Made by a program: the position numbers and the translations under genes. The notes below the pieces were generated by a model. It was not told the origin of the DNA. It saw nothing but the letters and a program-made list of their open reading frames with translations, and ran no database searches. From the NCBI GenBank assembly GCA_044892525.1, contig CM097885.1, positions 248,682,001 to 248,746,000 of the forward strand: a stretch of DNA of 64,000 nucleotides. Direction: 5' to 3'. Shown here in pieces: positions 1,632 through 30,066 of the stretch (position 1 is the first letter of the stretch; each line of letters opens with the position of its first letter). This DNA is from Schmidtea polychroa (lineage: Eukaryota).

Positions 1632-4600
1632 TTGTAAGTTAGATGTTCGAACAAGAGGATTAACAGTGTTTTTTGAAATTATCAAAAGTTATGGTACTCG
1701 TTTTAAATCGCGTTGGTGGCGTGATACATTCAGTGTGGTGTTTCGAGTCTTTCAACACGTACCCTCAGGCAAGGATAATACTAATATAAGCTTTGGAATA
1801 CCTAAGTTTACAGCAGCTAACGACCGTAGTGAATGGCTCAATACGACTTGTAATCATACACTCTATGCAGTTGTGGACGTGTTTTCTCAGTACTATGAAA
1901 CTTTACATATGGTTCTTTTAGGTAATTTACGTAATTATTTAAAAAATTCATTAATGAACTTTTGAAATTATTGTAAAAATATTTAAATTACCTTAAAAAA
2001 CTACCAGGACTCTTAAAATTATAGTAAATATAAAATACAAGGAAAATAGTAAGAATAAAACTTGAAAAAATTAAATCATTAATTAGTAAAATATAAAAAA
2101 AATAAAATCTTATTGAGAACAAAATCTTAAATCATTAAAAAAAATTATTATTAATATATATTAATTACACAAACAAAAGAAAATCACCAAATTATTTAGC
2201 TGAAAGATGTTGAAGAATAGATAGAAATATCATCATAATAGATTAATTAGTGTTTTGTAAATAGAAAGAGATATTTATAATTGGAATCTCACAATGTTAT
2301 GCGCCTTTGGAAATGAATAAAAGATTAAGGAATAATATGTTGAAGATAAAAATTTAGTGAATAGAAAAAGAATTATTGACAAGAGATAAATAATCAAATT
2401 TAATCAAAATTAAAATGAAATATATCGATCTTCATAAAATATACACTTTTCAGATTATTCTGGCCATTGGTATTGATGGGCACCGGGATTTTGAAATAAT
2501 TGGGAAATCAATTAATAATTGTGAAATCAATAAATATTAATAAATCTCTCGGAATCATTATTATTAATCAATCATTACTAAATCAATTAATAATTGTGAA
2601 ATCAATAAATATTAATAAATCTCTTGGAATAATTATTATTAATCAATCATTACTAAATCAATTAATAATTGTGAAATCAATAAATATTAATAAATCTCTC
2701 GGAATCATTATTAATAATCAATCATTAATAAATCAATAAATAATTGTGAAATCAATAAATATTAATAAATCTCTCGGAATCATTATTATTAATCAATCAT
2801 TACTAAATCAATAAATAATTGTGAAATCAATAAATATTAATAAATCTCTCGGAATCATTATTATTAATCAATCATTACTAAATCAATAAATAATTGTGAA
2901 ATCAATAAATATTAATAAATCTCTCGGAATCATTATTATTAATCAATCATTACTAAATCAATAAATAATTGTGAAATCAATAAATATTAATAAATCTCTT
3001 GGAATAATTATTAATCAATCATTATTAATTCAATAAATATTAAAAAAATCTCCTGGAAGTTTATCTAATATTAAGAATAACTTTATAACTTATAAAATAA
3101 CTGTTACAAAACTATTTATAAGCGAGAATCATTTGAACTGAATATAAACTGAATATAAATTTCAAATAAATAGCTGTCAATTTCCTTTGACTCAATTCCA
3201 TTATACAGAGCAAAACGCGAAATTTCAACAGAAAATCGATTATTTCTTGTCCCAAATGAAGGAACAGGAAATAAAAATTAAAATTGATCAATGATGAAAA
3301 TAAATAAATCTTTAAATTTTTAATCGAAAATATTGAATCATTTGGAAATTGAGAAAAACTTCATTGACTAAATAAATTATCCTTCTAAGCCAGAGATTCA
3401 CAAATCAGGAATCGTGAAATAAAAATATTGAGAAGATTTTATGAGAAAAACCCAACACTTATCAAAAGCATTTATTAATCATAATTATTAACAACACATT
3501 TCTAAGAGCACAGTTATTTTAAAATAACTATTTAAAATCCCATTTTTTTAATGTGATGGATGAGTTTGGTTTTCATTTAAAAGATTGATCATGTTTTCAA
3601 GTGACATGAGGCGTTTACTCTATTTAGTTCTAATGTGGCTTAGATGAAAAGGCTTTCCACATAGGTAATGGATTAATATTGTCAAGGTTTCTGTGACTAA
3701 ATTTGTGTATTCACTGTGACAAGGTAGCCAAAACTTACCTAAATCGTGCAGTGGAAACTGAAGATGTAATGATTAAGCTAATAATTCAATGATTCGATTA
3801 TATTTTTCAACTGATAGTCACACAATGTATAAAATTCAATTATTTCTTTAAATGTTTGCTCTTATAGTTAGCACCTTGATACTGCATTTAACAAAATATA
3901 TCTGCTAAACAAATCCATAATTGCTAATATATATTTCTTACCATTGATGGTATTATTAAATGATCCGAGAAAATCTATTAAAAACCGTTTTGAATAACGT
4001 TGTAATTTTATGTTTTATTATCCTCTCTTTGGTGCGTGTTGTTTTTTTGTTTTTGTTTTTTGGCTGTTTTCACAACTTTGAATCACCTTTTCAAAATGCT
4101 CGTTTCTATATCATATCAAAATGAGAAAATGTATAATTATTAAATATTCTTTATTCCTGCATGTATAATTTATAAATTCTTGACGGTTTTGCTTTGGGAT
4201 CCATATTTTATTGTTTTTATTACTTCTTGCATAATTTCGAACTTTTTTTTTCATTTCTGTTTTATTTCCAATTCGGTTGTATATTATAATTAATTTCTGC
4301 TGAATTTTCTTGCCATTTCTCATCATTAATGTCAGTATTCTTATTATCACTCTCCCTTTCTTTGAATCATCATGTATTTTCTGACATGGAACTCAGGTGT
4401 GATAATCTTTTCGAGGCATTGCATCGGTGTTTCAATGTAACCCACATTTTTCTGTATTTCAGTTCCATGTCTAAGCTGCTTAGGTGATTAATTCATGTCT
4501 GAAATTGTGGCACCCAATCGTTCTAGGCTAAAGTATTATTTAAATCATTTGCAAAATTGACCAGTTTCACAAATGATGTATGCACTTGTAATTTTCTTCA

Positions 4601-11040: not shown

Positions 11041-11359
11041 TTTTATTTTAATTAATAAATGTAATAACAATAATTTTAAGGTTTAAAATTAATTTTATAG
11101 ATTACAAAATTTAAGTAAAAAGTGAAATTTTTATAATTGATTATTTATTATATTAAAAATTAATTTTATAAAAATTTCTAGATTTAATAAGTAAAAATTA
11201 AGATATTATACTTTATTATTATAAAAAATAAAAAAATATTTAAAATACATTAAAATTTTTATTTTAAAATACAAAACACATTTAAAATAAAATTTTAAAG
11301 TGTAGCAGTAATTTCATGTAGAAAATATATTATTTATAATCATTTATTATTATAAATAT

Positions 11360-12101
11360 NNNNNNNNNNNNNNNNNNNNNNNNNNNNNNNNNNNNNNNNN
11401 NNNNNNNNNNNNNNNNNNNNNNNNNNNNNNNNNNNNNNNNNNNNNNNNNNNNNNNNNNNNNNNNNNNNNNNNNNNNNNNNNNNNNNNNNNNNNNNNNNNN
11501 NNNNNNNNNNNNNNNNNNNNNNNNNNNNNNNNNNNNNNNNNNNNNNNNNNNNNNNNNNNNNNNNNNNNNNNNNNNNNNNNNNNNNNNNNNNNNNNNNNNN
11601 NNNNNNNNNNNNNNNNNNNNNNNNNNNNNNNNNNNNNNNNNNNNNNNNNNNNNNNNNNNNNNNNNNNNNNNNNNNNNNNNNNNNNNNNNNNNNNNNNNNN
11701 NNNNNNNNNNNNNNNNNNNNNNNNNNNNNNNNNNNNNNNNNNNNNNNNNNNNNNNNNNNNNNNNNNNNNNNNNNNNNNNNNNNNNNNNNNNNNNNNNNNN
11801 NNNNNNNNNNNNNNNNNNNNNNNNNNNNNNNNNNNNNNNNNNNNNNNNNNNNNNNNNNNNNNNNNNNNNNNNNNNNNNNNNNNNNNNNNNNNNNNNNNNN
11901 NNNNNNNNNNNNNNNNNNNNNNNNNNNNNNNNNNNNNNNNNNNNNNNNNNNNNNNNNNNNNNNNNNNNNNNNNNNNNNNNNNNNNNNNNNNNNNNNNNNN
12001 NNNNNNNNNNNNNNNNNNNNNNNNNNNNNNNNNNNNNNNNNNNNNNNNNNNNNNNNNNNNNNNNNNNNNNNNNNNNNNNNNNNNNNNNNNNNNNNNNNNN
12101 N
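11360..12101. other. Assembly gap
   Basis: Run of N. Confidence 1.
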
Positions 12102-12863
12102 TTCTTTGAACGATTTCTCTCAACTTTAACATCAGCGACCAACTCTACTAACACAAATAATAATTCTGTAATATCATAATAAGTTTTACAAAGGAAAATC
12201 TATTCGTCAATATAACTTAAAATTACAGTAGTAATAAGGAAAATACATAAATCTTCAAGTAGCTGCTCGGATATGGAAAAAATTCAAAATTCTAAACCAA
12301 TACTCCTTCAATAACCGTAACACTTGGAACAACATTTTTTCCTTTTTTAGATAACATCAAGTAAAAAAGAAATCAAACAACTTTTCCACAACATAAAAGC
12401 TCTTATCACTGTTGCATCCTAATATGAAATGCCGTTCATCATTACTTGTCTTTCTTTTATTTAGTTTTCACTGAATATTGTTTATAAATTCACTTACATA
12501 ATATGTGACGTAACCTAGATTAGAAAAACGCATATGAATTTTCGGACTTGATGAATGCATTAAAAATAAAACCAACAATTACCAAAGGCATAAGATGATC
12601 TCAATTATCCAAGAAAACTAATTTAGAATACAAAATAGAGTTTTTGTTTCCATAAACTAAACCAAAACAATAAAATCTGAGCCCTTTAAAAGAATTATAG
12701 AAAATCGTAAGAAAAGAAGCTCTATAATTAATAATTAATAATTTCAAATAGTGAATTTTTTTCATAAAATTTCAGTTTCAAATTAAATTTTTATTTCATT
12801 TACAAATTTGTTTATTTTCATTCTTTTAGGTTATTGCGTAATAAAAAAAATATTGATATATAG

Positions 12864-13794: not shown

Positions 13795-13927
13795 NNNNNN
13801 NNNNNNNNNNNNNNNNNNNNNNNNNNNNNNNNNNNNNNNNNNNNNNNNNNNNNNNNNNNNNNNNNNNNNNNNNNNNNNNNNNNNNNNNNNNNNNNNNNNN
13901 NNNNNNNNNNNNNNNNNNNNNNNNNNN
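13795..13927. other. Assembly gap
   Basis: Run of N. Confidence 1.
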
Positions 13928-15079
13928 GTATTTCCAGGTTGAACAAATTATTTAGAAATTTTATCTATCTTGTCATGATTACTACCGCGGGTTATGCCAA
14001 TTTTAAATACCTTGCATAAGGGGGTACGGGGTATATATATGTGCGTGGGTTATATCAAACGGAGCACCTTTATCACATTCATTTGCAATTTGGAAGTCTG
14101 GTTCGAATCTCCGGCCATCACAGGAAGTATTGAACGTAATGTGGACTATGATACATATAGGACCTTTATTTAGCTATTCCATTGGCTACCATTTAAGCTA
14201 CATTTAAACGTTTAAGTAAAAAAAAGTTAAAGAAATGTTACAAATTTCAGTGTTTTTATATATTTAAAATAGTTTGCAAATAATAATAATAACAAATTAA
14301 AAGAAATTTCCATCTAATATGATGTTACTGACAAATTGTAAGTAGAATAGTAAAGCTACAAATCTATCTATATATAAAATAATTATTCTAGATCCGTGAT
14401 TATTATTTGATCATATCAGAATTTATGGCGTGATGAAAATCTGTGATTAATCTTTATTATTTGTTATTAATAAACATGAAATAATGAATTAGAAAGAAAT
14501 TACATTCATCACCTTAAAACGATTTTCTAGCACTTTGTTTTGCTATATAATATTATTACTATTATTGTTGCAATTATTAATGGTGATGATGGTAAGATTC
14601 CAATTTTTTGCAATTACTCATTTTTTAGGTTCAAATCCAAATGTCAGCACCTTGTAACATCAGTTATTATCAAAATTTTATATAAAAATTGTGTTGTTTC
14701 CATGTGTACTGTTATTGTGTTGAAGAAGTGCCTTGATTTAGTGTTGCATTATTACAGAATTGCATTGTGTTTGTTTGTATTTCCTATTCATAACTATTGG
14801 CCCCTTCTCTAGGCTGTGCGTATGTGCTCGAGCACACAGCCGGTAAATCTCATTCAGATTGGCCTCATACTCAATTGACAAATAAAAAACATATTATGTA
14901 TTTAAAAAATGTAAATAAAATAATTTAAAATTGTTGAGAATACCTAAAGCAGTGGTACTCAATTAATATAAAAGCGCGGAACACCATTCACATGATTTTT
15001 TTTACGCGGAACACTGACAAAAAATACTTGCCCACAATGAGTGACCAATCACAAATTACTATAAATCTGTCGTGAACGT

Positions 15080-15412
15080 TTTAGTGAGGAATCTATGCAC
15101 CCCAGCACCCCAACCCTAAAAAAAAACAGCGCTATTGACCCATATTTTCCACATTTATATGCTTTTTTACCCCATATTCTTCACTTTTTTTAACTTTTAA
15201 ACTTTGTCCCCTATTGCCATTAACCCTTAATTTCTTCCCTTAAAAGTAAAAAAGTTCGGAATAGATGTATTTATAGATTAGTAATTCCGAGAAAAGGTAA
15301 CGGGGTGCATAGATTCCTCACTACTTGGTCTTAAGGATTTAATGTTATAAGGATTTAATGTTATAAGAATATCAGATTACCTAATTCATAATGATCTAGA
15401 TCGCCTGATCAC
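15080..15412 (+). repeat. Left terminal inverted repeat of the Polinton
   Basis: Reverse complement of 29734-30066. The first two bases are TT instead of AG. Confidence 0.95.
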
Positions 15413-15732
15413 CTTAAGGTTTTGAAAGTTTTAAAAATAAAAAATTTTATGAAAATAGTAAAACTGCTCTATGGTGGTATTTTTTTTTTTTTTTTCACTG
15501 TCCCCTCAACAGTTTTTTTTGATCCGGATCATTTTTTTTTATTTATCAACCTCTTTCGTTTATCAAATCTCTTCCAATATACAAGCTGGCCAGACTCATA
15601 CATCAGAATCAATCCGATAATAGCAGCACGCCTTATTATTCGCTTCTCGCTCACGAAGTCGATTTCAACGGTGTTTTAAGCGTGCTGCTCGAAAGTACAA
15701 ATGAATTCGAAAGCGAATCCGAAAGAGGTCCG

Positions 15733-15824
15733 AAAACAACCAAGAAATAAATGTGCACATTATAGAATCGATCCGGGGGTGTTCGAAAGACAGGTGGCGA
15801 TAATTACCGGTTCGCCACCATCAC
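15733..15824 (-). ncRNA. Probable fourth tRNA-like Pol III unit (degenerate boxes), possibly extending into the hairpin region 15580-15730
   Basis: A-box-like TGGCGAACCGG starting at 15817 and B-box-like GGATCGATTCT at 15774-15764. It sits in register (232 bp) with the other three units, contains a GGTGGCGA/TCGCCACC hairpin and has only a weak T4 at 15736-15733. Confidence 0.45.
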
Positions 15825-15974
15825 CCGTTTCAATATTTTTTTTTTCATATTTATGTTTAAAAAATAATTAATTAATAAAAAAATAAAATAAAATAAAATA
15901 AAATATACAAGTACTTTATAAATATAAGATACCCACACTATTATTTTCAAATTTTTAATATTATTTTTATGTTG

Positions 15975-16056
15975 AAAAAAAACTAACCACAGTTAGGATT
16001 TGAACCGCTATCTATTTGAACCACTGTGCCGGTCTAGCCCACTGCGCCATCAAGGT
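15975..16056 (-). ncRNA. tRNA-like Pol III unit 1 (74 nt plus T8)
   Basis: A box TGGCGCAGTGG at tRNA positions 8-19, B box GGTTCAAATCC (16006-15996), T8 terminator (15982-15975). Cloverleaf stems are poor. It carries a second A-like box (CGGCACAGTGG) and a second B-like box (GGTTCAAATAG). Confidence 0.72.
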
Positions 16057-16215
16057 TTGAATTTTTGTCATTTTTTAGACTATAAATAATCGATTCAAGT
16101 TAAAACGTTTTTGATCTTAAATTTCCAAGAGTTGCCGTTGACCAATCACCTTTAAAATTTGTACAAGTACTAAATCGAGTATGCTGATCAATATTTTGTT
16201 TAAAAAAAAAATTTG

Positions 16216-16296
16216 AAAAAAAATGACCGAAATGGGATTTGAACCCATTGGTATTGGCAATGCAGTCGAGTGCTATTACCACTAAGCTATTAGAGC
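16216..16296 (-). ncRNA. tRNA-like Pol III unit 2 (73 nt plus T8), tRNA-Cys(GCA)-like
   Basis: A box TAGCTTAGTGG, D-stem GCT/AGC, GACTGCA anticodon-loop motif as in tRNA-Cys, perfect T-arm AATGGG-TTCAAAT-CCCATT and T8 terminator. Acceptor and anticodon stems are broken. Confidence 0.78.
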
Positions 16297-16458
16297 TATG
16301 CTCAATATAAAATAAGTTGTTAATGTGTGACTATTTATTGATGAAATTAATAATTAATTATTCATTTTCTCGACAACTACCACTCAGATCCATCATAAAA
16401 TTTAAATATATACTAAAATCAGTACGCTGAATCAGATTCCGTTGAAAAAAAAATATCG

Positions 16459-16540
16459 AAAAAAATTGACCAAAATCGAAAATTGAACCCGGTACTCCCG
16501 GTGATAAAATTGAAGCCTATTCCCACTCCGCTATAATGGC
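16459..16540 (-). ncRNA. tRNA-like Pol III unit 3 (75 nt plus T7), tRNA-Asp/Glu-like
   Basis: A box TAGCGGAGTGG; TCACCGGGAGTACCGGGTTCAATT resembles the tRNA-Asp/Glu variable and T-arm region; the B box is degenerate at its 3' end; T7 terminator. Confidence 0.68.
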
Positions 16541-16596
16541 TTACATAATATATTTAATTAATCCTATTGTGTGTGTGTAAATTTTAATATATAAAA

Positions 16597-17889
16597 ATGA
16601 ATAATATAAATCTTAAAATTCAAGAAAAAAATAAATTAAATCTTGATTATAATAAAGAATTTACTCATGAAATCAAGAAAAACGATGTACTTAAAATCTC
16701 CCCAACTTCAGGATCTATTGCAAACTTAAATCGTAGGGGTGATATAGTTTTTCAATCTCTTCAAACATCAAACCCTATAGATATTTGTAATGCCAAATTA
16801 TATTATAAAATCGAATTAGAAATTGAAGCAAACAAAGATATAACCCTAGAAAATAATTTCTTTCCAAATTTATTCTCCAACATGAGATTAAAACTAGGAT
16901 CATCAGAAATTGAAACTGTTTTGCATCCGGGAGTATATTCTACAATGTTAAATTTTATTTTGACTGGTTGTGATTATAAAAACGAATATGGTGAATTAAC
17001 AGGTTGGATTCCTGATGTTAATAAAGGGGATTTAGATAAAGATGGTTTAGATGTAAACCATGGTTACCATAAAAGAGCTGAACTTTATAAATCTAAAAAA
17101 TTTGAAGGTTATTTTGAATTAAAACACTTGTTTGGATTCCTTCAAAACTATAATCGTATACTTCATAATGTTTTTATAGAATTCATCTGTAATAGAGTAG
17201 AAGGTGATAAAAGATTGTTCTATGGAGCTGTAGATACAAAAGCTAAATTAAAATTATCAACACTTGAATTACATATACCTGAATGGACATTAAACCCACA
17301 TTCTGAGATTAAACTCCTTGAAAGATTAAATTCCAACAAGTCTATAAATGTAAATTATTTAAATAGAATCTGTAGTGAATTTAGTATGACAGAGGGTTCA
17401 ACATATTCTATAAAGGTAGCAAATTTAGCATACCGACCAAGATATATCTTGATTGGATTCAAAGAAGTAGATTCATCTTTCCAAAAAAATAACAACTTGT
17501 TTATTCAAAAGATTGGAGTTGATAATTTAAAAACAATCCAAATTCAATTAAATAGTTCTTATTATCCAATAAATAGAATGGAATTTAATATTGAAAATAA
17601 TGAAAACATATTCCCATATCTAAATTATATTGAAACATGTTATGATTTCAAAGTTGAACCGCAATTAAGTTTAGAAGATTTCAAAAATTTATATTCTATA
17701 TTTTGTATAAATGTTTCAGACCAAGATGATCGCCTAGCCATAAATAATGTTGATGTTACACTTCATGTAACAAAGGATTCTAATTTTAAAGCTAAAGTAT
17801 ATACATTAATATTAGAAGAAAAGAAAATAGAAATGAAATTATATGGTGGAAAGATTTCAATAATCGAAAATGTTAGGGGAGATTCTTGA
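16597..17889 (+). CDS. Major capsid protein (double jelly-roll type, 430 aa)
   Basis: Size, beta-rich pattern and Polinton MCP-like motifs (LNRRGDIVF, ENNFFPNLFSNMRLKLG, FGFLQNYNRIL, RPRYILIGF, IFCINVS), within a Polinton virion module. Confidence 0.85.
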   Translation: MNNINLKIQEKNKLNLDYNKEFTHEIKKNDVLKISPTSGSIANLNRRGDIVFQSLQTSNPIDICNAKLYYKIELEIEANKDITLENNFFPNLFSNMRLKLGSSEIETVLHPGVYSTMLNFILTGCDYKNEYGELTGWIPDVNKGDLDKDGLDVNHGYHKRAELYKSKKFEGYFELKHLFGFLQNYNRILHNVFIEFICNRVEGDKRLFYGAVDTKAKLKLSTLELHIPEWTLNPHSEIKLLERLNSNKSINVNYLNRICSEFSMTEGSTYSIKVANLAYRPRYILIGFKEVDSSFQKNNNLFIQKIGVDNLKTIQIQLNSSYYPINRMEFNIENNENIFPYLNYIETCYDFKVEPQLSLEDFKNLYSIFCINVSDQDDRLAINNVDVTLHVTKDSNFKAKVYTLILEEKKIEMKLYGGKISIIENVRGDS

Positions 17890-17918
17890 TATAATCCCTG
17901 ATATTTTAACATTTTAAA

Positions 17919-19328
17919 ATGTCTTTAAATAAATATTGGAGATGTGAAACTTGTAATTGTCAAGTTACAAGACATCATAAAGCAAGCCATCTTAAAACTA
18001 AAAAACATACAGTAGGTGACCTAATTCCACGAGCTGGAGGCGATTTGCAATCTTCAAAAACAACATCTTCAATATTAAAACCTTTTACTACAGAAAAATA
18101 TCCAGGTGAAAGACATTTATTTAAACACAACTATACTGGACCAGGAACAAGATTAGATATTAGATTAGATGAAAATAATAATCCCAAACAAGGAGAAGAA
18201 CCAATAAATAGAATTGATCAAGCAGCTTTAAAACATGACATTGCATACAATTCAACAAATCTTAGAGATAGACATGTTGCAGATGTGAATTTAATACATG
18301 ATTTAAATAGTATCCAAAATCCATCAACCCAAGAAAAGATTCAAAGAGCTCTAGTTAAATTAGCAATGAAAGGTAAGATTTTCATAGGCTTAGGACACAG
18401 TCCGATCACCATGGGTGCAAGACTTCCTAGGAAAGCAAAAGATGTTGCTTATAAAAAGATTATCGAACAAGCAGAGATTGAAAGATCCCTCGAGAGTACA
18501 GCCAAGACTAGTTTACAAACCCCAACAGAATCAGAAATAAAATATGCAAAGGAATTACACCATGAATTTAGAAAAAATAAAAAATATTTAAAAGTTCAAG
18601 TACATGAAAAAGATCAAACATGGTCTGCAGATTTAGTCTTTATGCCCAAATCATCAGACCCTGAAAAATATAAAATAATTTTAACTGTAATAGATTTATA
18701 TACAAGATTTGCTTTTGCAAGATGTTTAGAAAATAAAACAGGATATTCTATTACAGAAGCATTTGAAAATATATTTGAAGAAAATCAAAGAATCCCAAAA
18801 TATTTATGGTGTGATAAAGGAACAGAATTTTATAACAAAGTTTTTACAAAGTTTTTAAATGAAAATGATATTAAATTATATTCAACAGAAAACGAAGGAA
18901 AAGCAGTCGTAGTTGAAAGATTAAATAGAACATTAAAAAATAAAATGTGGAAATATTTTACTGCTATTGGAAAACAAAAATGGAACAATGAATTGTTACA
19001 AAAGATTGTAAATGAATATAATAATGATGTACATAGTTCTATAAAATTAACACCTTTAAATGCTTCCATGAAGCCTGAAACCATTAAAGTGGTAAATATT
19101 GAAAATGATGTTATTGAAAAACCAAAGTTTAAAATTGGTGACCGAGTAAGAATATTTAAATATAAAAATAAATTTGAAAAAGGATTCACAGCAAAATGGA
19201 CAAATGAAATTTTTATTATAAATAAAATACATTATACAACTCCAATAACATATAGCATCTTTGATTTAAATAATGAAAAAATATTAGGTAGATTTTATAA
19301 TAATGAACTACAGAAAACAGATTTTTAA
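17919..19328 (+). CDS. Zinc finger + parvovirus-type phospholipase A2 + retroviral-like DDE integrase fusion (469 aa)
   Basis: N-terminal C-x2-C-x11-H-x5-H. PLA2 calcium loop YTGPG and catalytic DQAALKHDIAY. Integrase core WSAD, CDKGTEF and VVERLNRTLK (D-D-E intact). C-terminal FKIGDRVR SH3-like domain. Confidence 0.93.
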   Translation: MSLNKYWRCETCNCQVTRHHKASHLKTKKHTVGDLIPRAGGDLQSSKTTSSILKPFTTEKYPGERHLFKHNYTGPGTRLDIRLDENNNPKQGEEPINRIDQAALKHDIAYNSTNLRDRHVADVNLIHDLNSIQNPSTQEKIQRALVKLAMKGKIFIGLGHSPITMGARLPRKAKDVAYKKIIEQAEIERSLESTAKTSLQTPTESEIKYAKELHHEFRKNKKYLKVQVHEKDQTWSADLVFMPKSSDPEKYKIILTVIDLYTRFAFARCLENKTGYSITEAFENIFEENQRIPKYLWCDKGTEFYNKVFTKFLNENDIKLYSTENEGKAVVVERLNRTLKNKMWKYFTAIGKQKWNNELLQKIVNEYNNDVHSSIKLTPLNASMKPETIKVVNIENDVIEKPKFKIGDRVRIFKYKNKFEKGFTAKWTNEIFIINKIHYTTPITYSIFDLNNEKILGRFYNNELQKTDF

Positions 19329-19339
19329 GTCGACAAGCC

Positions 19340-20131
19340 CTAAAACAAACTTTTCCATATTTCAGCTTCTTCTCTATCCAAATAAATATAATTATATTTT
19401 TCTTTCCAATGATTATCAACAAACATATCAAACATATTCTTATCAGGTTCAACATTTGAAAATAAATCATTATAAATCATATTCTTATCACGGCGATCTA
19501 ATTTAAAAAATATAAAACAATTGGAATTATTTCTTATTGAATTTTTATCTAAAGCATAATATGTTTGAGATATATAAATAACATTACAATTATTATGTCG
19601 ACCTCGTGTAAAGTAACTCTTTTGAATCTCTTGATTTTTCATATTAACAACATCATCAAATATAACTAGATTCTTTTTATCTTTAGGAAGTAAATCACAA
19701 TGTAAAACATCTTCAGGTTTATTAGAGAATAAAACTTGAATTGCCTCCTGCCCTTCTTCACAAATATAATCATTTTTATTACTAATATCTGATTCTAAAA
19801 TCTTTTCCTTATACCAATCAACCATATCACAAGGTTGAAAAACTTCTTCAGGACACCTATGTTGATTTTTAAAAATATCAATTATTGCTTTTTTAGTTAA
19901 TTTATTTTCAAATCCACATTTCAAAAGTTGTAATTCTGGTTGATTTATGGTTGTAGAATAAAAGATTAAATTATTATAATCTAAAAAATCATCTTCAAGT
20001 AACATTCTCAAAACAAGTACATTCTTTCCACATCCAGAAGAACCAACAATTAATAATCTAAAATTATCAGGAAATACTTTATTATTGAATTTACTCTTAT
20101 GTCTATTTAAAATTGGTTTCCAAGTATCCAT
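19340..20131 (-). CDS. A32/FtsK-like DNA packaging ATPase (263 aa)
   Basis: Walker A GSSGCGKN, Walker B LVIFDD, and the RGRHNNCNVIYISQ arginine-finger/sensor motif. Confidence 0.92.
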   Translation of the reverse strand: MDTWKPILNRHKSKFNNKVFPDNFRLLIVGSSGCGKNVLVLRMLLEDDFLDYNNLIFYSTTINQPELQLLKCGFENKLTKKAIIDIFKNQHRCPEEVFQPCDMVDWYKEKILESDISNKNDYICEEGQEAIQVLFSNKPEDVLHCDLLPKDKKNLVIFDDVVNMKNQEIQKSYFTRGRHNNCNVIYISQTYYALDKNSIRNNSNCFIFFKLDRRDKNMIYNDLFSNVEPDKNMFDMFVDNHWKEKYNYIYLDREEAEIWKSLF

Positions 20132-20147
20132 TTTTATTTATTATAAA

Positions 20148-20726
20148 ATGACAACTGAAGAATCTTTGCAAGAATTAATAAATTCAAATAAAAATAAATC
20201 AGTTGTAATTGATGGTAAAAAATATTTTATTGGAAAACATGTAAAAGAACAAGTTAGAGCGAAGCTCCACGAAGCTAAAGAAGGTGGCATTCTTCCATTA
20301 GCTGCTTTAATACCTGCAATCATTGCTGGTTTATCAGGTGCTGCTGGAATAGCTGGAGGAATTGCAACTACAGTTCAAAAAGCTAAAGAATCTCAAAAGA
20401 CAGACCTAGAAAAAGAAAAACTACAAACTGAAATCGATTCAATGAAGAAGGTAGGGCAAGCTAAAGGGGGAGTGTCCGTTGGAAAGGGTCTCTATCTTAA
20501 TCCATATGAGGGGAGTCGGCAAAAGTCTCAGGGCAAAGGTCTCTATCTTGATCCTTATAAAGGTAGAGGTTTAAATGATTTTTTAAAAAATCAAATTTCT
20601 ACATCTGAATCTTTATCTTCAAAAGATAAAGAAGATTTAAAAAAAATATGTAAATCTTTAAAGAATGGATGCCTTTGTAAAACTAAAAATGGTAAAGGAT
20701 TATACTTGAAGCCCTTCAAACTATGA
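20148..20726 (+). CDS. Putative virion core protein with an adenovirus pX-like segment (about 192 aa, ATG at 20148)
   Basis: GGILPLAALIPAIIAG resembles adenovirus pX GGILPLLIPLIAAAIG. There are three GKGLYLxP(Y/F) repeats. The start lies in the element's AAAATG context. Confidence 0.7.
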   Translation: MTTEESLQELINSNKNKSVVIDGKKYFIGKHVKEQVRAKLHEAKEGGILPLAALIPAIIAGLSGAAGIAGGIATTVQKAKESQKTDLEKEKLQTEIDSMKKVGQAKGGVSVGKGLYLNPYEGSRQKSQGKGLYLDPYKGRGLNDFLKNQISTSESLSSKDKEDLKKICKSLKNGCLCKTKNGKGLYLKPFKL

Positions 20727-20748
20727 TACCATTTTTGATACCATTAAA

Positions 20749-21633
20749 ATGGTATATGAAGAAAGATTAGCACTTTTAAAAAAATTACAATCAGAACAAG
20801 ATAAATATAATAAAAAAGATACAACTCAACATGCTGAATCTATAATATTAAATGAGGTAATAACACAACAACAGGGGCCAACAATTAAAGCTATAAAAGA
20901 GTTGGAAGATTTCAATGAGCAAGCAAAATTTAAAGAGTTAGAAGATAAAAAACAAAAAATAAAAGAACTAGAGTGGCAGGATAAAGAAAAAGAATCCAGT
21001 GAAAACCATCCTGAAAGTCATTCTGAAAGAAATCAAAGAAAACGCAGAAGAATTTCTAATGTGGAAGAAGAAGAAATGTTTTTAAAAACAAAACCTCTTA
21101 AAGTTGATCCTAAAATTAGAGATGATTTACCTCCTTCAATTAGACCCACATTTAATACTAATACTGAAGGATATCAAATAATAACAATTAATAAACAAAA
21201 CTTTACTTTATATTCAAATTCAGAAAATAAATCACGTATTCATTCACAAAATGTTTATAATAATGAATATTTAGACTTTGAATTTACAGATGATTTTTAT
21301 AGATTACTTTGTGGATATTCTTCAGATGATGTTGAAGAAATTAAAAAATATTTAAATTTAATAAAATTAATAAGAGCTAGTTCTAAAGCAAAATATATTC
21401 AAGATTTAAAGAATTATTTAAATAAAAATGAAAAGGGTTATGTTGTTACAGAGGGAGAGGGATTAATTAGTGAAGGAAATCCCATCAATCTTTTTATTGA
21501 ATTAAGAAAACTATTAGCTGCAAGGAAAGCAGGACATAATAATTTAGATTCTGATATTTTAAAGATTTCTAAAGATTTGTTAAAACAAGGAATAATTTCA
21601 AAAGATAAATTTAATAAGTATACGAAGTTATAA
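20749..21633 (+). CDS. Polinton uncharacterised protein (294 aa)
   Basis: Intact ORF in the gene array. The C-terminal GEGL...ELRKLLAARKAGHNN...LLKQGIIS motif resembles a recurrent Maverick accessory protein. Basic RKRRR patch. Confidence 0.7.
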   Translation: MVYEERLALLKKLQSEQDKYNKKDTTQHAESIILNEVITQQQGPTIKAIKELEDFNEQAKFKELEDKKQKIKELEWQDKEKESSENHPESHSERNQRKRRRISNVEEEEMFLKTKPLKVDPKIRDDLPPSIRPTFNTNTEGYQIITINKQNFTLYSNSENKSRIHSQNVYNNEYLDFEFTDDFYRLLCGYSSDDVEEIKKYLNLIKLIRASSKAKYIQDLKNYLNKNEKGYVVTEGEGLISEGNPINLFIELRKLLAARKAGHNNLDSDILKISKDLLKQGIISKDKFNKYTKL

Positions 21634-21655
21634 ATACGAAGTTTTAAAATACAAA

Positions 21656-22120
21656 ATGACTCCTTCAATATTAGATTTTTTAAAAACATTTGGAATAAAT
21701 GCAAAAACAAATTTTGATTTAAAAGATTATGCAAATTATTTAAATTTAAAAATTAAAATATTAATGAATGATGAATTATCAAGTCTGGAGAGTCCCCTGA
21801 ATATAATAATCAATTATCAAAATTCAAATGAAAAAGGATCTCATTGGGTTTGTATATATAAGAAATCTATCTACTTTGATTCTTTTGGGATTAAACCTAC
21901 TAAAGAAGTTGAAGATTATCTCTTGAGGGGTTCTCCGATTGATTCCCCAAATGGTTATACTTTTAACTCTTTACAAGTTCAACCTTTGAATACTAAAATA
22001 TGTGGTATTTTAAGTTTATATGTTTTGTATAGATTGAATAAGGGAGAGGGAAAGGGGCATACGCAGGATTTTGAATCTATAATTCAAGAAATTTATAATG
22101 ATCTAGAATCTCTACTATAA
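21656..22120 (+). CDS. Adenain-like cysteine protease (154 aa)
   Basis: GSHWV (His), YFDSFG (Asp) and VQPLNTKICG (Gln, Cys) catalytic motifs. Confidence 0.93.
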   Translation: MTPSILDFLKTFGINAKTNFDLKDYANYLNLKIKILMNDELSSLESPLNIIINYQNSNEKGSHWVCIYKKSIYFDSFGIKPTKEVEDYLLRGSPIDSPNGYTFNSLQVQPLNTKICGILSLYVLYRLNKGEGKGHTQDFESIIQEIYNDLESLL

Positions 22121-22168
22121 GGATTTTTACTATAAGAATTTTTACTATATGAATTTACTACTAAAGAA

Positions 22169-22933
22169 ATGGAGCTTCACAACCCTCCGGAAGATAATTT
22201 AAAAAAAATGGTAAACATAATGTCAGATAAATATTCAAGAACTTTATCTATAAATTCAAAAGAATCAGAGTTTACTATAAACTTTCAAGATTCAATTAAA
22301 TTAGATCAAAATTTAAATTATGAATTGGGGCTATTATGGTTTTGTGCTTATAATACTATTTTTAATATAACTAAAGATAATAATAAATTTACTATTCAAA
22401 CTCGTGATGGGCATAAACCAGAAATTATAACAATAGAACCTGGGGCATATGAGATAAAAGATTTAAATGATATACTTTCTATAAAAACAAATGAAGGTAT
22501 TAAAATTAAAATGGATATACCAACTTCAAAATGTGTAATGACTTTGAAGAATATAAAAATTAGTTTTTTAGATAATTGTTTCTTTCACACAGTTTTAGGA
22601 TTTAAACCTATGGATATAACAATAAAAGAAGATAAAATAATAACATCAGAACATATTATAAAAATAATAAATACAAACACAATAAATATTCATTGCGATT
22701 GTATAACAGGTTCTTATAATAATGGTAAACAAACAAATGTTTTATATTCCTTTCCCTCAAACACAGTTCCTATGGGATATAAAATAGTTGAAAGAATGAA
22801 TCCTCCAAATTATTTACCTTTATGTAGAAAATATATAATGGATATTAATTTTAAAATTCTTAATCAAGAAGGAGAATTGATTGATTTTAATGGAGAAGAG
22901 ATTTCAATGTATTTACATTTGAAACAGGTTTAG
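22169..22933 (+). CDS. Minor capsid (penton-like, single jelly-roll) protein (254 aa)
   Basis: Polinton mCP-like motifs YNTIFNI, IEPGAYEI, INIHCDCITGSY, VLYSF and NQEGELIDFNGE. Confidence 0.88.
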   Translation: MELHNPPEDNLKKMVNIMSDKYSRTLSINSKESEFTINFQDSIKLDQNLNYELGLLWFCAYNTIFNITKDNNKFTIQTRDGHKPEIITIEPGAYEIKDLNDILSIKTNEGIKIKMDIPTSKCVMTLKNIKISFLDNCFFHTVLGFKPMDITIKEDKIITSEHIIKIINTNTINIHCDCITGSYNNGKQTNVLYSFPSNTVPMGYKIVERMNPPNYLPLCRKYIMDINFKILNQEGELIDFNGEEISMYLHLKQV

Positions 22934-22973
22934 TTCCTCTCAGGGGACTCCGTCCATTTTAAATTATTAATAA

Positions 22974-23984
22974 ATGAGTTCTTATATTCCATGTAATAGA
23001 GGTGGTGGAACAATAAAAACAGGGTTTAATACAGAAGAAATATTAACTTTAACAGAAAATAAATATATTAATGAAAGAGGTGATTCAATGAAGGGTGATT
23101 TAATTTTAAATGGACACAAGATAAAAGAATTATCTTTTCCAACTGATGAAGCTGATGCAGTTAATAAGAAATATGTAGATGGTGTTAAAAAATATACTGA
23201 TTTAACAACAACAAGAATTGAAAGTTCATTAACAACAAAAATTGATTCAATGGAATCAAAGCTTAATAATATCGAACAACGATTTAATGATAAATTTGAC
23301 AAGTTACAAAGTCTGTTAACTGAACAAGTTGTAAAGTTAAATACTGCTATATTAAATTCTAAAGATAAACAAATTATGAATACTAAATTTAATGCAATAT
23401 ATAATATAATAAATGAGATGATTACATCATTTAATAAAAGAATTTCAAATTTAGAGTCTCATGGAACACACATTAACACCACACATAGTATTAGAAAAAG
23501 AGCTGCTGAATTAGAACAGAATAAAACATTATTACCCCATACATATAAACATTTTATAGAACCAAGTTTAATAACAACAAAAAGTAAAGAATGGGGTGTT
23601 TTTATGGTTGTAAAAATTATTGATCCTTATTTCTTTTTGTTTGATGATGATAATGAAAGAATGAAATGGTTTGTGAAATGTGATTATAATAGTAAGCTTG
23701 AAAAGGGTGATGTTATAATGACTAGTTATGATTTACCACACGGAGATTGGTATGTTAATACTCATTCACATGGACTACATAAAGTTAAAAGTAAGAATAT
23801 TCATTTTTCTAGTTCACTTGTACAATATATAGATTTAATATTTTATGAAAAAAAGGTTGATGTTGATGAAGTTCGTAAAGCATTGAGAGAATTGTATAAA
23901 GATATCCTCTCAACAAGAGTTTCTTTTGATATCCGAGTATTGGTGCCAGATGGTGCTCAGAAGAATAAAGTCTTATTTTTTTAA
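22974..23984 (+). CDS. Putative fibre/spike-like protein (336 aa)
   Basis: GDSMKGDLILNGHKIKELSFPTDEADAVNKKYVD tail-fibre-type motif, then a long heptad coiled coil and a globular C-terminus. It follows the penton gene. Confidence 0.55.
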   Translation: MSSYIPCNRGGGTIKTGFNTEEILTLTENKYINERGDSMKGDLILNGHKIKELSFPTDEADAVNKKYVDGVKKYTDLTTTRIESSLTTKIDSMESKLNNIEQRFNDKFDKLQSLLTEQVVKLNTAILNSKDKQIMNTKFNAIYNIINEMITSFNKRISNLESHGTHINTTHSIRKRAAELEQNKTLLPHTYKHFIEPSLITTKSKEWGVFMVVKIIDPYFFLFDDDNERMKWFVKCDYNSKLEKGDVIMTSYDLPHGDWYVNTHSHGLHKVKSKNIHFSSSLVQYIDLIFYEKKVDVDEVRKALRELYKDILSTRVSFDIRVLVPDGAQKNKVLFF

Positions 23985-23992
23985 TTATTAAA

Positions 23993-24604
23993 ATGGAAGA
24001 AGTAAGAGAAGAAAAAATTTACCCAGAATTGAGATCATCAGGATATTATTCCGAAGGTCACAAAGGTTCCAAGGCCTCGGCTCCCACAGAACTTGAAATT
24101 ATGAGAGTAAAAGAATTTAAATCAGAAACCTTACATTTACAAGATTTATTAAAGCATTATAAAAAAATTAAAAATAGATGGAATAAAGGGAATACAGTTT
24201 TAAAAGTTATAGGTTATTCTTTAGGATTTGCATCTGCAATATTAACAGTTATTTTACCCATAACTTTACCAGTTTTAACACTTGCACCTGTAATACTTGG
24301 AAGTATTTCTGTGGCTGATGGTTTCTTAACTGAAATAGTTTCATTATCTTATACTTCTAAAAAGAAAAGTTTATATAGAGAAGTTTGTTTATCAATAGAA
24401 TTAGGAATCTCTAAATTATTTTTATTTCAATTAAAAGCTTTGGAAGATGGAATCCTGACAGACGAAGAAATAATGAAATCAAATCAAATAATACAAGATA
24501 TAAAGAATGAGGTTATAAGATTAAAAAGGGAGGGCATGGTGGCTAATGTTATAAGTAATAAAAAAACATCTCGAGAAAAATGGTTAAAGAATTCTTACTT
24601 ATAA
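23993..24604 (+). CDS. Polinton accessory membrane protein (203 aa, hydrophobic hairpin)
   Basis: IYPEL...SAP N-terminus, hydrophobic stretch VIGYSLGFASAILTVILPITLPVLTLAPVILG and C-terminal KALEDGILTDEE motif, resembling a family seen in Mavericks and some large DNA viruses. Confidence 0.65.
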   Translation: MEEVREEKIYPELRSSGYYSEGHKGSKASAPTELEIMRVKEFKSETLHLQDLLKHYKKIKNRWNKGNTVLKVIGYSLGFASAILTVILPITLPVLTLAPVILGSISVADGFLTEIVSLSYTSKKKSLYREVCLSIELGISKLFLFQLKALEDGILTDEEIMKSNQIIQDIKNEVIRLKREGMVANVISNKKTSREKWLKNSYL

Positions 24605-24698
24605 AATGGGTGTATTTTTAAAAAAGTAGATCAGGTTGCTATAGTTGCTTAAATTAATTGTCGACATTTTATTATTAAAAAATTAAATATCGTTGGTT

Positions 24699-25244
24699 TC
24701 AGTTATGGTTGAAAGCCAACCTATGAATCATTAATTTATGATCTTTAAATTCTTTATCACTTAGACCTTTTATATATTCAGGATCAGTATTAAAATATTT
24801 AAGTTCTAAACATATAGGATTAAAAACTTGAGAATATAAAGGTTTCTCGATTTCTCTCTCGGGATAAATAATTTCAACATTATAAATATCAAGATCAGTA
24901 ATCTTTGTATCATATAACTTATTCAACTTTTCTAGATTTTTTATTATAGGGATTAAATTATTTCCAATAGGTAGAGTTGTCTTTAATATGAATCTCTTAT
25001 CATCATAATTTGATAATGATACTTTTTGAGATTCTATCAAGTGAATATCATGGTTTTCACTTTTAAGTTGATGTATTTCATCAATTTTATCTTTATGATT
25101 TGGATTCAATGTATCTATATAATCTTGATGAGAAAGATTCTTTGCAACCACTCTCTGTATTCCTTTACATCTGTTATCCTTTAAATTAGTAATATTTTTT
25201 ATAATTTCAAAAATGTTATTTTCTTGATTTTTAGTTTCCATCAT
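24699..25244 (-). CDS. Stand-alone paralogue of the pPolB C-terminal region (thumb plus extension), 181 aa
   Basis: Aligns by eye at roughly 60% identity over about 150 aa with the last about 165 aa of the adjacent PolB (KGIQ, NYDDKRFIL, KTTLPIGN, ELKYFNTDPEYI). It has its own ATG in TATAAAATG context and an open frame. Confidence 0.85.
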   Translation of the reverse strand: MMETKNQENNIFEIIKNITNLKDNRCKGIQRVVAKNLSHQDYIDTLNPNHKDKIDEIHQLKSENHDIHLIESQKVSLSNYDDKRFILKTTLPIGNNLIPIIKNLEKLNKLYDTKITDLDIYNVEIIYPEREIEKPLYSQVFNPICLELKYFNTDPEYIKGLSDKEFKDHKLMIHRLAFNHN

Positions 25245-25268
25245 TTTATAGTGTTAAAATTCTAATTC

Positions 25269-28200
25269 TTAGACCAGTCGTAATTGATTTATAATTATTT
25301 CTGCAGTAATGCTTTTTAACATTAATTTATGTGATTTAAAGTCTTCTGGTGTTAGTCCTTGGATATATTCAGGATCAGTATTAAAATATTTAAGTTCTAT
25401 AGGTTTTATATTTTGAACTTGATTATATAAAGGTTTAGGAATTAATATTTCAGGATATTGGATTTCTACTTTAGCAAGTTGAAGGTCTGTAATCTCTAGG
25501 TTATAAATTTCATTTATTTTATCAAGATTTTTTATTATAGGGATTAAATCATTTCCAATAGGTAATGTTGTCTTCAAGTCAGAAAGTATAAATCTTTTAT
25601 CATCATAATTTGTTATAGCAATCTTGTTACACTCTTCAAGATATATATTATGTTTCTCTGATTTAAGATGATGGGTTTTAGCAATTTTATTTTTATAATT
25701 TATATTTAATGAATCTTTATACTCTTGATGTGTGAAGGTTTTTGACACTGATTTTTGAATTCCTTTACTTTTATTTTCTTTATAGCTTTTCGGGTTTTCA
25801 GGGAATGAAGGATATTCAAATGTGTGATCTATTTCAACAGATCCTTCTCCCTCCCCTATTATAAATTTTATTGTATGCTCTTTCATAATTGGTTTGTCTT
25901 TCATTTCAAGAGAATATTGTTTAGGTCTAATAAACACTCCTCCACTTATTGGAGTATTTGGTTTTTCATCTTTAAAAGTAAATAATTCTCCAGAGTTGTT
26001 TATTAATTTATTTAAGGTTTCGTTTTCACTTATTTCCTTTTTTAAATCTTTACTATGACCTTTTAAAAACATACTATCAGTGTCCATAGCATGCATGGAT
26101 ATTCGATCTCCAAAATGTGGTACTAGAACATCATAGTAGGCTTCATACATTTGAAGCTTTGAAAGTTCTAAAATTGAAAACCCTATAAAGATTGGTTTAT
26201 TATAAGTTTTTACAGAGTTTTTAATCTCTATGGCTATAAGGTTACTAGAGAATATCTCGGCATTTTTAAATGTGGGCTTTCCAATTATCCGGTTGTACCT
26301 ATTAAGGTCTTTGGATGTATTGGTCAAAAGCTCTACACGTGTGTACTTGTCTATATTCTCCATGGTCTTTCCAAAGACCGCATTGTTCAGGAGTTTGTAA
26401 ATCATATCAAGAAATGCATTTCCAGCTCTCTTTGCTGCATTTCTTTTCAAAATATTTCCCTCTATGAATTTTTTCATAAAAGGGGCTTGTCGAAATTTAA
26501 TAATGGAATGTACTTTTTTTAAAACCATTCCATGGGAGAGATAAAACTGAAGGAGTCTATAATGACAAAGGTAATCAGTTTTATCGGTCTGATCGCATAA
26601 AAGTTTTATACAGGGCGATCTATCCTGAGCCATCTGCCAGTCTGAAAGTTCTTCAGTCGAGATCTTTCTTCTTACTGGAGCAAATGGAAAGAATCTTGTC
26701 CTGGATTTTATTTCATTGGGATATTCAAGATCGCATTCTATGACATATCCAAATTGAGAATCTTTTGGTGTTTTTAGAATTTCTTGTATTAATTCCTCAG
26801 TGGGCTCTTCCCAGGTGAACTTGCCAATTGGAAGGTATTGAGTCATTACTCCCGCATATAAAGCTGTTGCATCTATATACATTATTTCAGAAGGATTAGA
26901 AAGACCTTCCATTATTTCCTTACGATCTTCTGGGTTTGTTATTTCTACATATAGAGCATCAGGATCTTTGAAAAATTTAGGATAAAGAGTTGTAAAATTA
27001 TTAGCATTTATTTCTCTATTCCCTTGTACTGAAGAAATACCTCCTCTAATATTATATTTATATACATTAAACATATCAAGCTCAACTAATAATTCAATAG
27101 TTTTATTTCTTACTGCTACATCTTCATCAGTCCATATGGTATATAATAATATATCCCAAGCTAGAGAGGGAGCGGTTATATAATTATAAGGTTTTAATTC
27201 AAAAGCTTTTGAAAATGTCTCGAAGCAATCAGCTAAGATATAAACATCCAAGGAAAGATACATGTCAGTATATTCTCCAAGGTTTCTACAGTTGAATAGA
27301 TTCCACATTTTAACTGCACGGGAATATTCCTGATCAGAAATCCCTGATTGTGTTAAAACAGAAAAGAAATCTTCTTGGGGTGGGAGTAATTCATTATATT
27401 TTTCAAAGGAGTCTATATAATCATATGGATAGATTCCTTTTGCTAGACAGGTATTATATTCCTCTAATGGAATATTGTTTTTTAATAACACATGTTCTTT
27501 TGTATATTTAAAATCCTCAGGGTTCATAGTTTTAGCAATCCCATCCAAAGACATCCCTAAGAAATTTAACGAGTCCAAAAACTTAAAGCATCCATATTGA
27601 ATGCTTTTATATTTTTCTTTTGTAAGTCCAATAACCTTGAAAGAGTTTTTAGCATTTGCGGCCAGATGCTTAATGAATAGGTGAATATCATAGCCAAAAA
27701 GATTGTGAAATATAAATGGTATGTGTGTTGGTTTTTTACAATTGAGATTACATTTTTTATGGGCTGCTCCTCTGTAATTATTTTCTCTTTTAAAATGATC
27801 ATGGTCTGCAACCTTTGGCTCCTCATCCTCCTCCTGAATATCAAACTCTTGTTTACACATCCAGCAGTGTGTTGCATTTTTATATTCTTCCTCTTGTTCT
27901 TCTGAAAAATTCATAGGAAAGTTGGATTTTAATATTATATATAATTCATGTTCTAGATTATTTAAAGTTTTAACAAAATGATCTAGAGTCTCTTTGTCAG
28001 AAGTTCCTCTAAATGAATATTCTCTAGATTCTACAAGTTCTGGATAATTACTTTTAAAAAACATTTTATAAGCAGAGGGTAATTGTTTTGTTAGTTTTAC
28101 AGTATTAGTTTTTGTTCGTCTTAGTTTTACATTTATAGCTTCAAAATCACAATAAACCACTCCCAATGCTTCTAATAGATTGGAATAGTTTTTAAACCTC

Positions 28201-29660: not shown

Positions 29661-29733
29661 TTTTAAAAGAATCTTTTGGTTGGATACGATGTTTTGGTTT
29701 TGATATTAATTTTTATTTTTTTTAAATCTAAAA

Positions 29734-30066
29734 GTGATCAGGCGACCTAGATCATTATGAATTAGGTAATCTGATATTCTTATAACATTAAATCCTTATA
29801 ACATTAAATCCTTAAGACCAAGTAGTGAGGAATCTATGCATCCCGTTACCTTTTCTCGGAATTACTAATCTATAAATACATCTATTCCGAACTTTTTTAC
29901 TTTTAAGGGAAGAAATTAAGGGTTAATGGCAATAGGGGACAAAGTTTAAAAGTTAAAAAAAGTGAAGAATATGGGGTAAAAAAGCATATAAATGTGGAAA
30001 ATATGGGTCAATAGCGCTGTTTTTTTTGAGGGTTGGGGTGCTGGGGTGCATAGATTCCTCACTACT
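29734..30066 (-). repeat. Right terminal inverted repeat of the Polinton
   Basis: Reverse complement of 15080-15412; ends in ACTACT. Confidence 0.95.

Follow-up and report, generated by a model that had tools for sequence, protein, structure and literature searches.

The Polinton and its left spacer

The window, by which we mean the whole 64-kb stretch of DNA analyzed, is AT-rich, with a GC content of about 27%, and carries a compact and apparently intact Polinton/Maverick element (Table 1). Genes for polymerase B, an rve integrase, a double-jelly-roll capsid protein, and an A32-type ATPase are all found together with terminal inverted repeats, which bears out the assignment to the Polintons made in the initial annotation. 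Each of these four hallmark genes is encoded by one uninterrupted open reading frame (ORF), the number of breaks counted being zero. With respect to a maturation protease, a penton protein, and a target-site duplication of 5 to 6 bp, six ORFs of the element gave no significant Pfam match, and no clean duplication is visible at the element ends. A nested position of the Polinton inside another transposon was considered and rejected, the inverted-repeat score of the flanks being 28, compared with a maximum of 38 for shuffled sequences.

The intergenic gaps of the Polinton measure 8 to 94 nt, the sole exception being the long gap that separates the capsid gene from the left terminal repeat. The initial annotation had placed a group of tRNA-like units in this gap, which is correct. 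At the right end of the element, the gap comprises just 45 nt and holds no counterpart of these units.

Elsewhere in the window, features of animal type can be recognized, namely an ATG4-type peptidase exon (positions 44460 to 44909), ORFs of the mariner-like helix-turn-helix kind, and a hAT transposase ORF (positions 56264 to 57379), the best named relatives of the last being Hydra vulgaris proteins with 62 to 67% identity. Masked runs of N are found at positions 11360 to 12101 and 13795 to 13927.

TABLE 1 Features of the Polinton and of the spacer next to its capsid gene, in window positions
Feature	Position	Strand	Description
Polinton/Maverick element	15082-30064		About 15 kb, gene-dense, with terminal inverted repeats and hallmark domains
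Left terminal inverted repeat	15082-15440		359 nt, 96% complementary to its partner at 29706-30064
Long noncoding gap, left terminal repeat to capsid gene	15441-16596		1,156 nt, contains all tRNA-like units
Block near left terminal repeat	15441-15830		GC-richer (38.5%), about 97% identical in copy L007
T8 run	15975-15982	-	Directly after u3
Unit u3	15983-16056	-	74 nt, exact A and B boxes, no tRNA fold; common to four other family copies
Old tandem duplication	16065-16548	-	Two repeats of about 240 bp, each made up of a unit (u1 or u2) and its spacer
Segment with u1 and u2	16073-16576		504 bp, present in the window, absent from L001, L006, L007, and L044
T8 run, then T10 run	16202-16223	-	Directly after u2
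Unit u2, tRNA-Cys(GCA)-like pseudogene	16224-16296	-	73 nt, found by the Rfam tRNA model and by ARAGORN at 90% thresholds
T7 run, then T9 run	16445-16465	-	Double terminator-like, directly after u1
Unit u1, decayed tRNA-like unit	16466-16540	-	75 nt, A box intact, B box without its last two C's
Major capsid protein gene (double jelly roll)	16597-17889	+	PF21738, E value 6e-26; divergent from the tRNA-like units
Integrase (rve) ORF	17919-19328	+	Domain match; phospholipase-A2-like domain at the N-terminus
A32-like packaging ATPase	19340-20131	-	Domain match
Protein-primed polymerase B	25269-29660	-	1,463 amino acids
Right terminal inverted repeat	29706-30064		Partner of 15082-15440

Three tRNA-gene-shaped units in the spacer

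The left gap holds three units, u1, u2, and u3, which are clustered within 600 nt beside the left terminal repeat, an arrangement seen in this copy of the element only. The A boxes start at positions 16533 (u1), 16289 (u2), and 16049 (u3) on the minus strand and the B boxes at positions 16489, 16245, and 16006, respectively. The resulting distance from A to B box is 43 to 44 nt, as in a tRNA gene, where it spans positions 8 to 52, and falls inside the range of 30 to 60 nt taken for a type 2 Pol III gene. T7, T8, and T8 runs begin 0 to 2 nt past u1, u2, and u3, so that at the motif level, all three show the layout of a type 2 Pol III gene, with an A box at about +8, a B box at about +52, and an oligo-T stop. 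In the window, 57 to 59 nt separate the capsid ATG from the 5′ end of u1.

The degenerate box patterns used for counting were generalized from the letters of the units themselves but coincide with the textbook A- and B-box consensus; they give evidence at the motif level only. The A-box pattern matches 4 times in the 64 kb, compared with 0.10 expected, and three of the four matches are in the left gap; the B-box pattern matches 6 times, compared with 0.64 expected, with three of the six in the left gap. A composite pattern (A box, 28 to 40 nt, B box, 8 to 30 nt, TTTT) was run over 188 kb, comprising the window plus 43 loci, and matches solely u1 to u3 and the u3 orthologues. Runs of at least seven T's have a background of 0.85 per kb per strand, which amounts to a chance of about 0.5% that one begins no more than 6 nt from any chosen point.

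An explanation of the motifs as chance matches in AT-rich DNA could draw on the many spurious ARAGORN matches that appear in the window at relaxed thresholds. It is already refuted by box counts far above those of shuffled sequences, by the composite pattern being unique to these sites, and by the T run following each of the three units, and its probability is negligible. The three tRNA-gene-shaped units are real and nonrandom, the combination of A box, B box, and T run being far beyond chance. The description in the initial annotation of three minus-strand units of 73 to 75 nt with A and B boxes and direct T7 to T8 stops agrees with the pattern counts and the T-run statistics.

Resemblance of the units to tRNA

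Only u2 passes the Rfam tRNA model, and barely, scoring 32.4 bits where 29 are required. Its T arm is intact, its acceptor stem retains 5 of 7 pairs and its anticodon stem 2 of 5, and the loop carries GCA, the anticodon of tRNA-Cys. For u1 and u3, each searched alone in 96 nt, there is no Rfam tRNA match even at an E value of up to 10, and beyond the tRNA match of u2, no Rfam family is matched by any unit. ARAGORN at default settings makes no tRNA call on the units. At relaxed thresholds, it finds u2 at 90% and u1 first at 85%, where five further matches appear elsewhere in the window; u3 is never found.

The folding z-scores are +0.15 for u1, −2.45 for u2, and +0.82 for u3; u1 and u3, and likewise the proposed fourth unit, u4, fold no better than shuffled sequence, and none of the units has a cloverleaf as its minimum-energy fold. 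No hairpins were found between the units and their terminators or in the spacers, whose folding z-scores range from +0.6 to +1.6. The statement that promoter boxes and terminators are kept while the stems are broken is thus a fair one, judged by Rfam, ARAGORN, and the folding of u1 to u3. Decoding is impossible for all three units, and a tRNA fold is impossible for two of the three.

Tandem duplication of u1 and u2 and the proposed fourth unit

The units u1 and u2 are homologous across body and spacer, with 74% identity over 81 to 95 nt (blastn E value of 3e-10), and an 81-nt stretch that is 74% identical recurs at a spacing of 243. The identity amounts to 64% for the bodies and 62% for the spacers, both exceeding all 200 shuffles. 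The initial annotation was therefore mistaken in stating that the units are not tandem duplicates, as far as u1 and u2 are concerned. The regular spacing of these two is the result of a tandem duplication that included the spacer, and because their divergence of about 36% is far greater than the 2 to 4% between copies of the family, the duplication must be old. The comparison of u3 with u1 and u2 gives a body identity of 59%, close to the limit of what shuffles reach, and a spacer identity of 53%, which equals the shuffle mean. The resemblance of u3 to u1 and u2 is solely through the boxes.

A weaker fourth unit, said to lie in register with the others, has to be dropped. The A-box spacings of 244, 240, and 232 given for the series are arithmetically right. 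The proposed u4 (positions 15745 to 15830, minus strand) has two mismatches in each box, no detectable similarity to u1 to u3, and, unlike these, no run of four or more T's until about +95. Its distance from u3 is not conserved, three copies having values of 223, 213, and 247 nt. The u4 sequence does hold a perfect 8-bp hairpin with arms at positions 15812 to 15819 and 15793 to 15800, and a search of IMG/VR with a 27-mer from this hairpin gave no match.

Distribution of the units among relatives of the element

Seven metagenome copies of the element, most of them on short contigs, encode capsid proteins 96 to 98% identical to that of the window (L001, L006, L007, L008, L044, L045, and L046). 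The copy L045 shows 14 nt upstream of its capsid gene and is hence uninformative on the units, leaving the window and six copies for comparison. The only unit of L001, L006, L007, and L044 is u3, whose 5′ end is found at a distance of about 40 nt from the capsid start; the segment of the window that holds u1 and u2 is absent, and no target-site duplication is found at its edges. Upstream of the capsid gene, 76 nt are visible in L008 and 63 nt in L046, and the sequence there is unrelated. The unit u3 is thus found in 5 of the 7 informative copies, and u1 and u2 are found in 1 of 7; in 5 of the 7, the distance between the capsid start and a unit is 40 to 59 nt.

The boxes of u3 are near consensus in five copies, with the A box altered in one and the B box altered in two. 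Its acceptor-like pairing (5 of 7 pairs) withstands three one-sided changes between copies. The sequence of L007 extends past u4 as far as the terminal repeat, and this part shares about 97% identity with the window. When u3 is compared between these two, about 13 of 75 positions are changed, whereas its flanks differ at 2 to 3%; the differences within u3 fall on 2 of 22 box positions and 11 of 53 nonbox positions, numbers too few for significance. Small ORFs in the GC-richer block adjoining the left terminal repeat are preserved in both the window and L007, the differences again being too few to judge coding.

More distant relatives comprise L002 to L005 and 35 JGI metagenome loci, with capsid identities of 25 to 75%. 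Neither ARAGORN nor Rfam detects a tRNA in these roughly 40 loci, and the composite box pattern has no match in them. Several of them have a divergent gene directly upstream of the capsid gene. Others carry their own unrelated tandem repeats at this place, and these repeats indicate that duplication is a general mode of change in the spacer. The 125-bp repeats of L002, whose capsid protein is 73% identical, were considered as possible kin of u3 and rejected, the alignment score of 24 lying close to the shuffle mean of 24.8. A capsid search of IMG/VR found no relative, and a 17-mer of u3 gave three matches there, on large contigs without tRNA genes, which are put down to chance.

The tRNA-like units are confined to one young family, and their number is variable within that family. 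A conserved and regularly spaced four-unit cassette, as proposed initially, is not what the copies show, given u1 and u2 in one of seven and about 40 relatives without units. The initial annotation had itself named absence from other copies as an observation that would speak against its proposal; this is the case for u1 and u2, which are missing from every other copy visible, and is not the case for u3, which occurs in four of them.

Comparison with known tRNA-like Pol III genes

Genes of the tRNA type inside small double-jelly-roll elements are known from other systems. A survey of 8,300 Polinton-like virus and virophage genomes reported 558 tRNA matches (PMC12220804), and predicted tRNA genes are also present in MELD viruses (PMC8502044, Fig. 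6). As in the element described here, these genes were presumably captured from hosts. However, the tRNAs of those viruses are called as intact and discussed in terms of codon compensation, whereas here one unit barely passes as a tRNA and none decodes; furthermore, the carrier here is a polymerase-plus-integrase Polinton of an animal. The remark in the initial annotation that it was not aware of such a cassette in Polintons therefore holds only in part, since tRNA genes are reported for Polinton-like viruses, virophages, and MELD viruses (PMC12220804, PMC8502044). For tRNA-like Pol III units in a degenerate state within a polymerase-plus-integrase Polinton, our literature searches returned no report.

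The TMERs of murine gammaherpesvirus 68 are similar in that several nondecoding, tRNA-like Pol III units with A and B boxes are clustered at the left genome end (PMC4337559). The TMERs combine a tRNA-like fold with one or two pre-miRNA hairpins ahead of the terminator (PMC4337559), whereas the units described here stop directly and without hairpins, two of the three are unfolded, and the copy number is not conserved.

Adenoviruses are related to Polintons through their capsid, ATPase, and polymerase genes, and the Pol III genes for their VA RNAs contain A and B boxes internally and give highly structured RNAs of about 160 nt. Compared with the VA RNAs by description only, the units here are shorter (about 75 nt), a stable structure is absent in u1 and u3, and the one Rfam match is to tRNA. 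A VA-RNA- or TMER-like role of the units lacks structural support.

Sequences with B boxes at chromatin boundaries, such as tDNA barriers and the so-called extra TFIIIC sites, can act without a functional RNA. The Polinton likewise offers candidate sites bearing B boxes, but these are missing from some copies. As in tRNA pseudogenes and the heads of SINEs, decayed tRNA sequence keeps its promoter boxes here; unlike tRNA-derived SINEs, the units have no body, tail, flanking duplications, or dispersed copies in the window.

Origin and possible function of the units

We give about an even chance to the explanation that the units are decaying captured tRNA genes in a fast-changing spacer beside the capsid gene, without forming a conserved small-RNA cassette. 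A lineage of Polintons would have picked up tRNA genes, of which u1 to u3 would be the remnants, within the single long noncoding spacer of the element, which appears to change quickly through duplication and deletion. Here, u2 would represent a tRNA-Cys(GCA)-like pseudogene and u1 an old tandem duplicate of it, spacer included, with u3 probably being a separate and more decayed unit that is common to most copies of the family. The surviving promoter geometry and the stops make it plausible that TFIIIC and Pol III could still bind the units and yield short RNAs of about 75 nt. At the same time, the loss of decoding, the inability of two of the three units to fold, and the unit count varying among near-identical elements suggest that the units are dispensable and are probably not selected as RNAs. 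If they have a present effect, the binding of Pol III factors next to the capsid promoter would be likelier than a structured decoy RNA.

A role of the units as DNA would need no RNA structure at all. Bound by TFIIIC or Pol III, they might form barriers that shield the element or keep the capsid promoter open, and several features fit this: the boxes are retained and the stems lost, the units separate the terminal repeat from the first gene, to which they are divergent, and lie close to the capsid start in most informative copies, a compact element still keeps a long spacer, and the period of about 240 bp may correspond to one unit plus roughly one nucleosome. We nevertheless consider such a role rather unlikely, since two near-identical copies have no unit in the 63 to 76 nt visible upstream of the capsid gene, the number of units ranges from three to one, the B box of u1 is weakened, and the box letters of u3 differ between copies. 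In addition, the short gap at the right end has no matching feature, and all more distant relatives are without units. Working Pol III genes for short, nondecoding RNAs acting in trans, as decoys in the manner of VA RNAs and TMERs or as sources of small RNAs, would account for the complete layout of promoter and terminator occurring three times and for the retention of u3 in most copies, and the eight nonaminoacylated tRNA-like RNAs of murine gammaherpesvirus 68 set a precedent (PMC4337559). Their existence here is quite doubtful, however, because neither u1 nor u3 has a stable or conserved fold, hairpins are lacking before the terminators and within the spacers, none of the other copies seen has u1 or u2, u3 changes more quickly than the sequence flanking it, and the Rfam match is limited to tRNA for u2.

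The units could also have nothing to do with the Polinton and be separate host insertions into a tolerant spacer, either tRNA-derived SINEs or retro-copied tRNA pseudogenes. Isolated fragments resembling tRNA halves in the host flanks, near positions 14628, 31147, and 36114, point in this direction, as does the presence or absence of u1 and u2 as a single block. Against this, each head is followed immediately by its T7 to T8 stop with no SINE body or tail, the 504-bp segment has no flanking target-site duplication, and the spacer common to u1 and u2 indicates a local duplication and not two insertions; there is no further copy within the 64-kb window, and the position of u3 agrees among five copies that stem from different samples. 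The units thus do not look like independent SINE insertions with their own target-site duplications, which the initial annotation had listed among the outcomes that would contradict it, and we assign a low probability to an origin of this kind.

Some observations sit uneasily with the decay of captured tRNA genes. It is odd for a compact element to retain 1.16 kb of useless DNA, strong T7 to T8 stops are kept in all three units, and u3 combines near-consensus boxes in five copies and a similar distance to the capsid start with an acceptor-like pairing that outlasts the changes between copies. A possible but improbable interpretation is that u3, with u1 and u2 as extras, might be a maintained Pol III or TFIIIC element abutting the capsid promoter, either as a gene for a short noncoding RNA or as a chromatin boundary.

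Implications for Polinton biology

If the units are nothing but decaying captured tRNA genes, they would be a small footnote, indicating that animal Polintons once acquired tRNA genes, as Polinton-like viruses and virophages did, and that the spacer adjoining the capsid gene undergoes quick turnover. Should u3 be transcribed or bound by TFIIIC, it would provide an example of a bona fide Polinton carrying a Pol III module, for which we found no earlier report in our literature searches. A maintained u3 would then represent a tRNA-derived Pol III module in a lineage related to the adenoviruses, echoing the presumed tRNA origin of the VA RNA genes, and a transcribed or TFIIIC-bound u3 would offer a tractable case of an integrated virus-like element using the Pol III machinery.

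Protein domains in the element

The integrase ORF of the Polinton carries a parvovirus-type phospholipase-A2-like (PLA2-like) domain, which lies N-terminal to the rve core (see the table below). For adintoviruses, a separate gene has been described for the PLA2-like protein (PMC8502044). The same pairing of PLA2-like domain and rve core is on record for the 463-aa product encoded at positions 1414-2805 of L006, a near-identical family copy on a metagenome contig.

The zinc finger at the start of the polymerase ORF is of the dsRNA-binding 'jaz' type. Adenovirus core protein X (PF05829) is matched faintly and below threshold at 20085-20726 on the plus strand, with an E value of 0.048; a sub-threshold match to the same family, also marked as faint, is located at 3286-3798 of L005, a more distant Polinton relative. 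The related metagenome contig L010 shows a mir-754-like match at 3810-3889 on the minus strand; its score of 48.6 bits falls short of the 84 required for that family.

Features of the element and its flanks
Feature	Position	Strand	Details
Integrase ORF	17919-19328	+	PLA2-like domain (PF08398, E 4e-9), then rve core
Polymerase ORF	25269-29660	-	1,463 aa; N-terminal C2H2 zinc finger (PF12171, E 1.7e-5)
Isolated B-box-like/A-box-like motifs	14628-14638, 31147-31157, 36114-36124	+	Host flanks; tRNA-half-like context
GC-richer block adjoining left terminal repeat	15441-15830		38.5% GC vs 27%

Repeats in the host flanks

The isolated box motifs in the flanks hint that the host genome contains tRNA-derived repeats or pseudogene fragments. 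The flanks also contain a tandem array (approximately 2505-3040) whose units recur roughly every 75 bp, recognized by regularly spaced BLAST matches, as well as an AT-rich nested inverted-repeat cluster and a pair of inverted arms (60442-60753 and 40883-41526, respectively). The arms, of 82 nt each and 480 nt apart, possibly represent a small DNA transposon. A 274-aa "ORF" at 11330-12154 is an artefact of the masked N run at 11360-12101.

Element ends and the spacer upstream of the capsid gene

The sequences adjoining the element ends (15076-15081 and 30065-30070) show no clean match as a target-site duplication of 5-6 bp. The GC-richer block is about 97% identical to its counterpart in L007, another near-identical family copy, and includes small ORFs on both strands and an 8-bp hairpin with perfect pairing between its arms at 15812-15819 and 15793-15800.

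The region preceding the capsid gene also contains direct repeats in two more distant relatives: in L002 (1-277) they recur about every 125 bp, and in L005 (1337-1753) they are 51-nt copies 366 nt apart, with 84% identity. These repeats are the relatives' own and unrelated to the tRNA-like units, and repeat formation in this spacer seems to be general.
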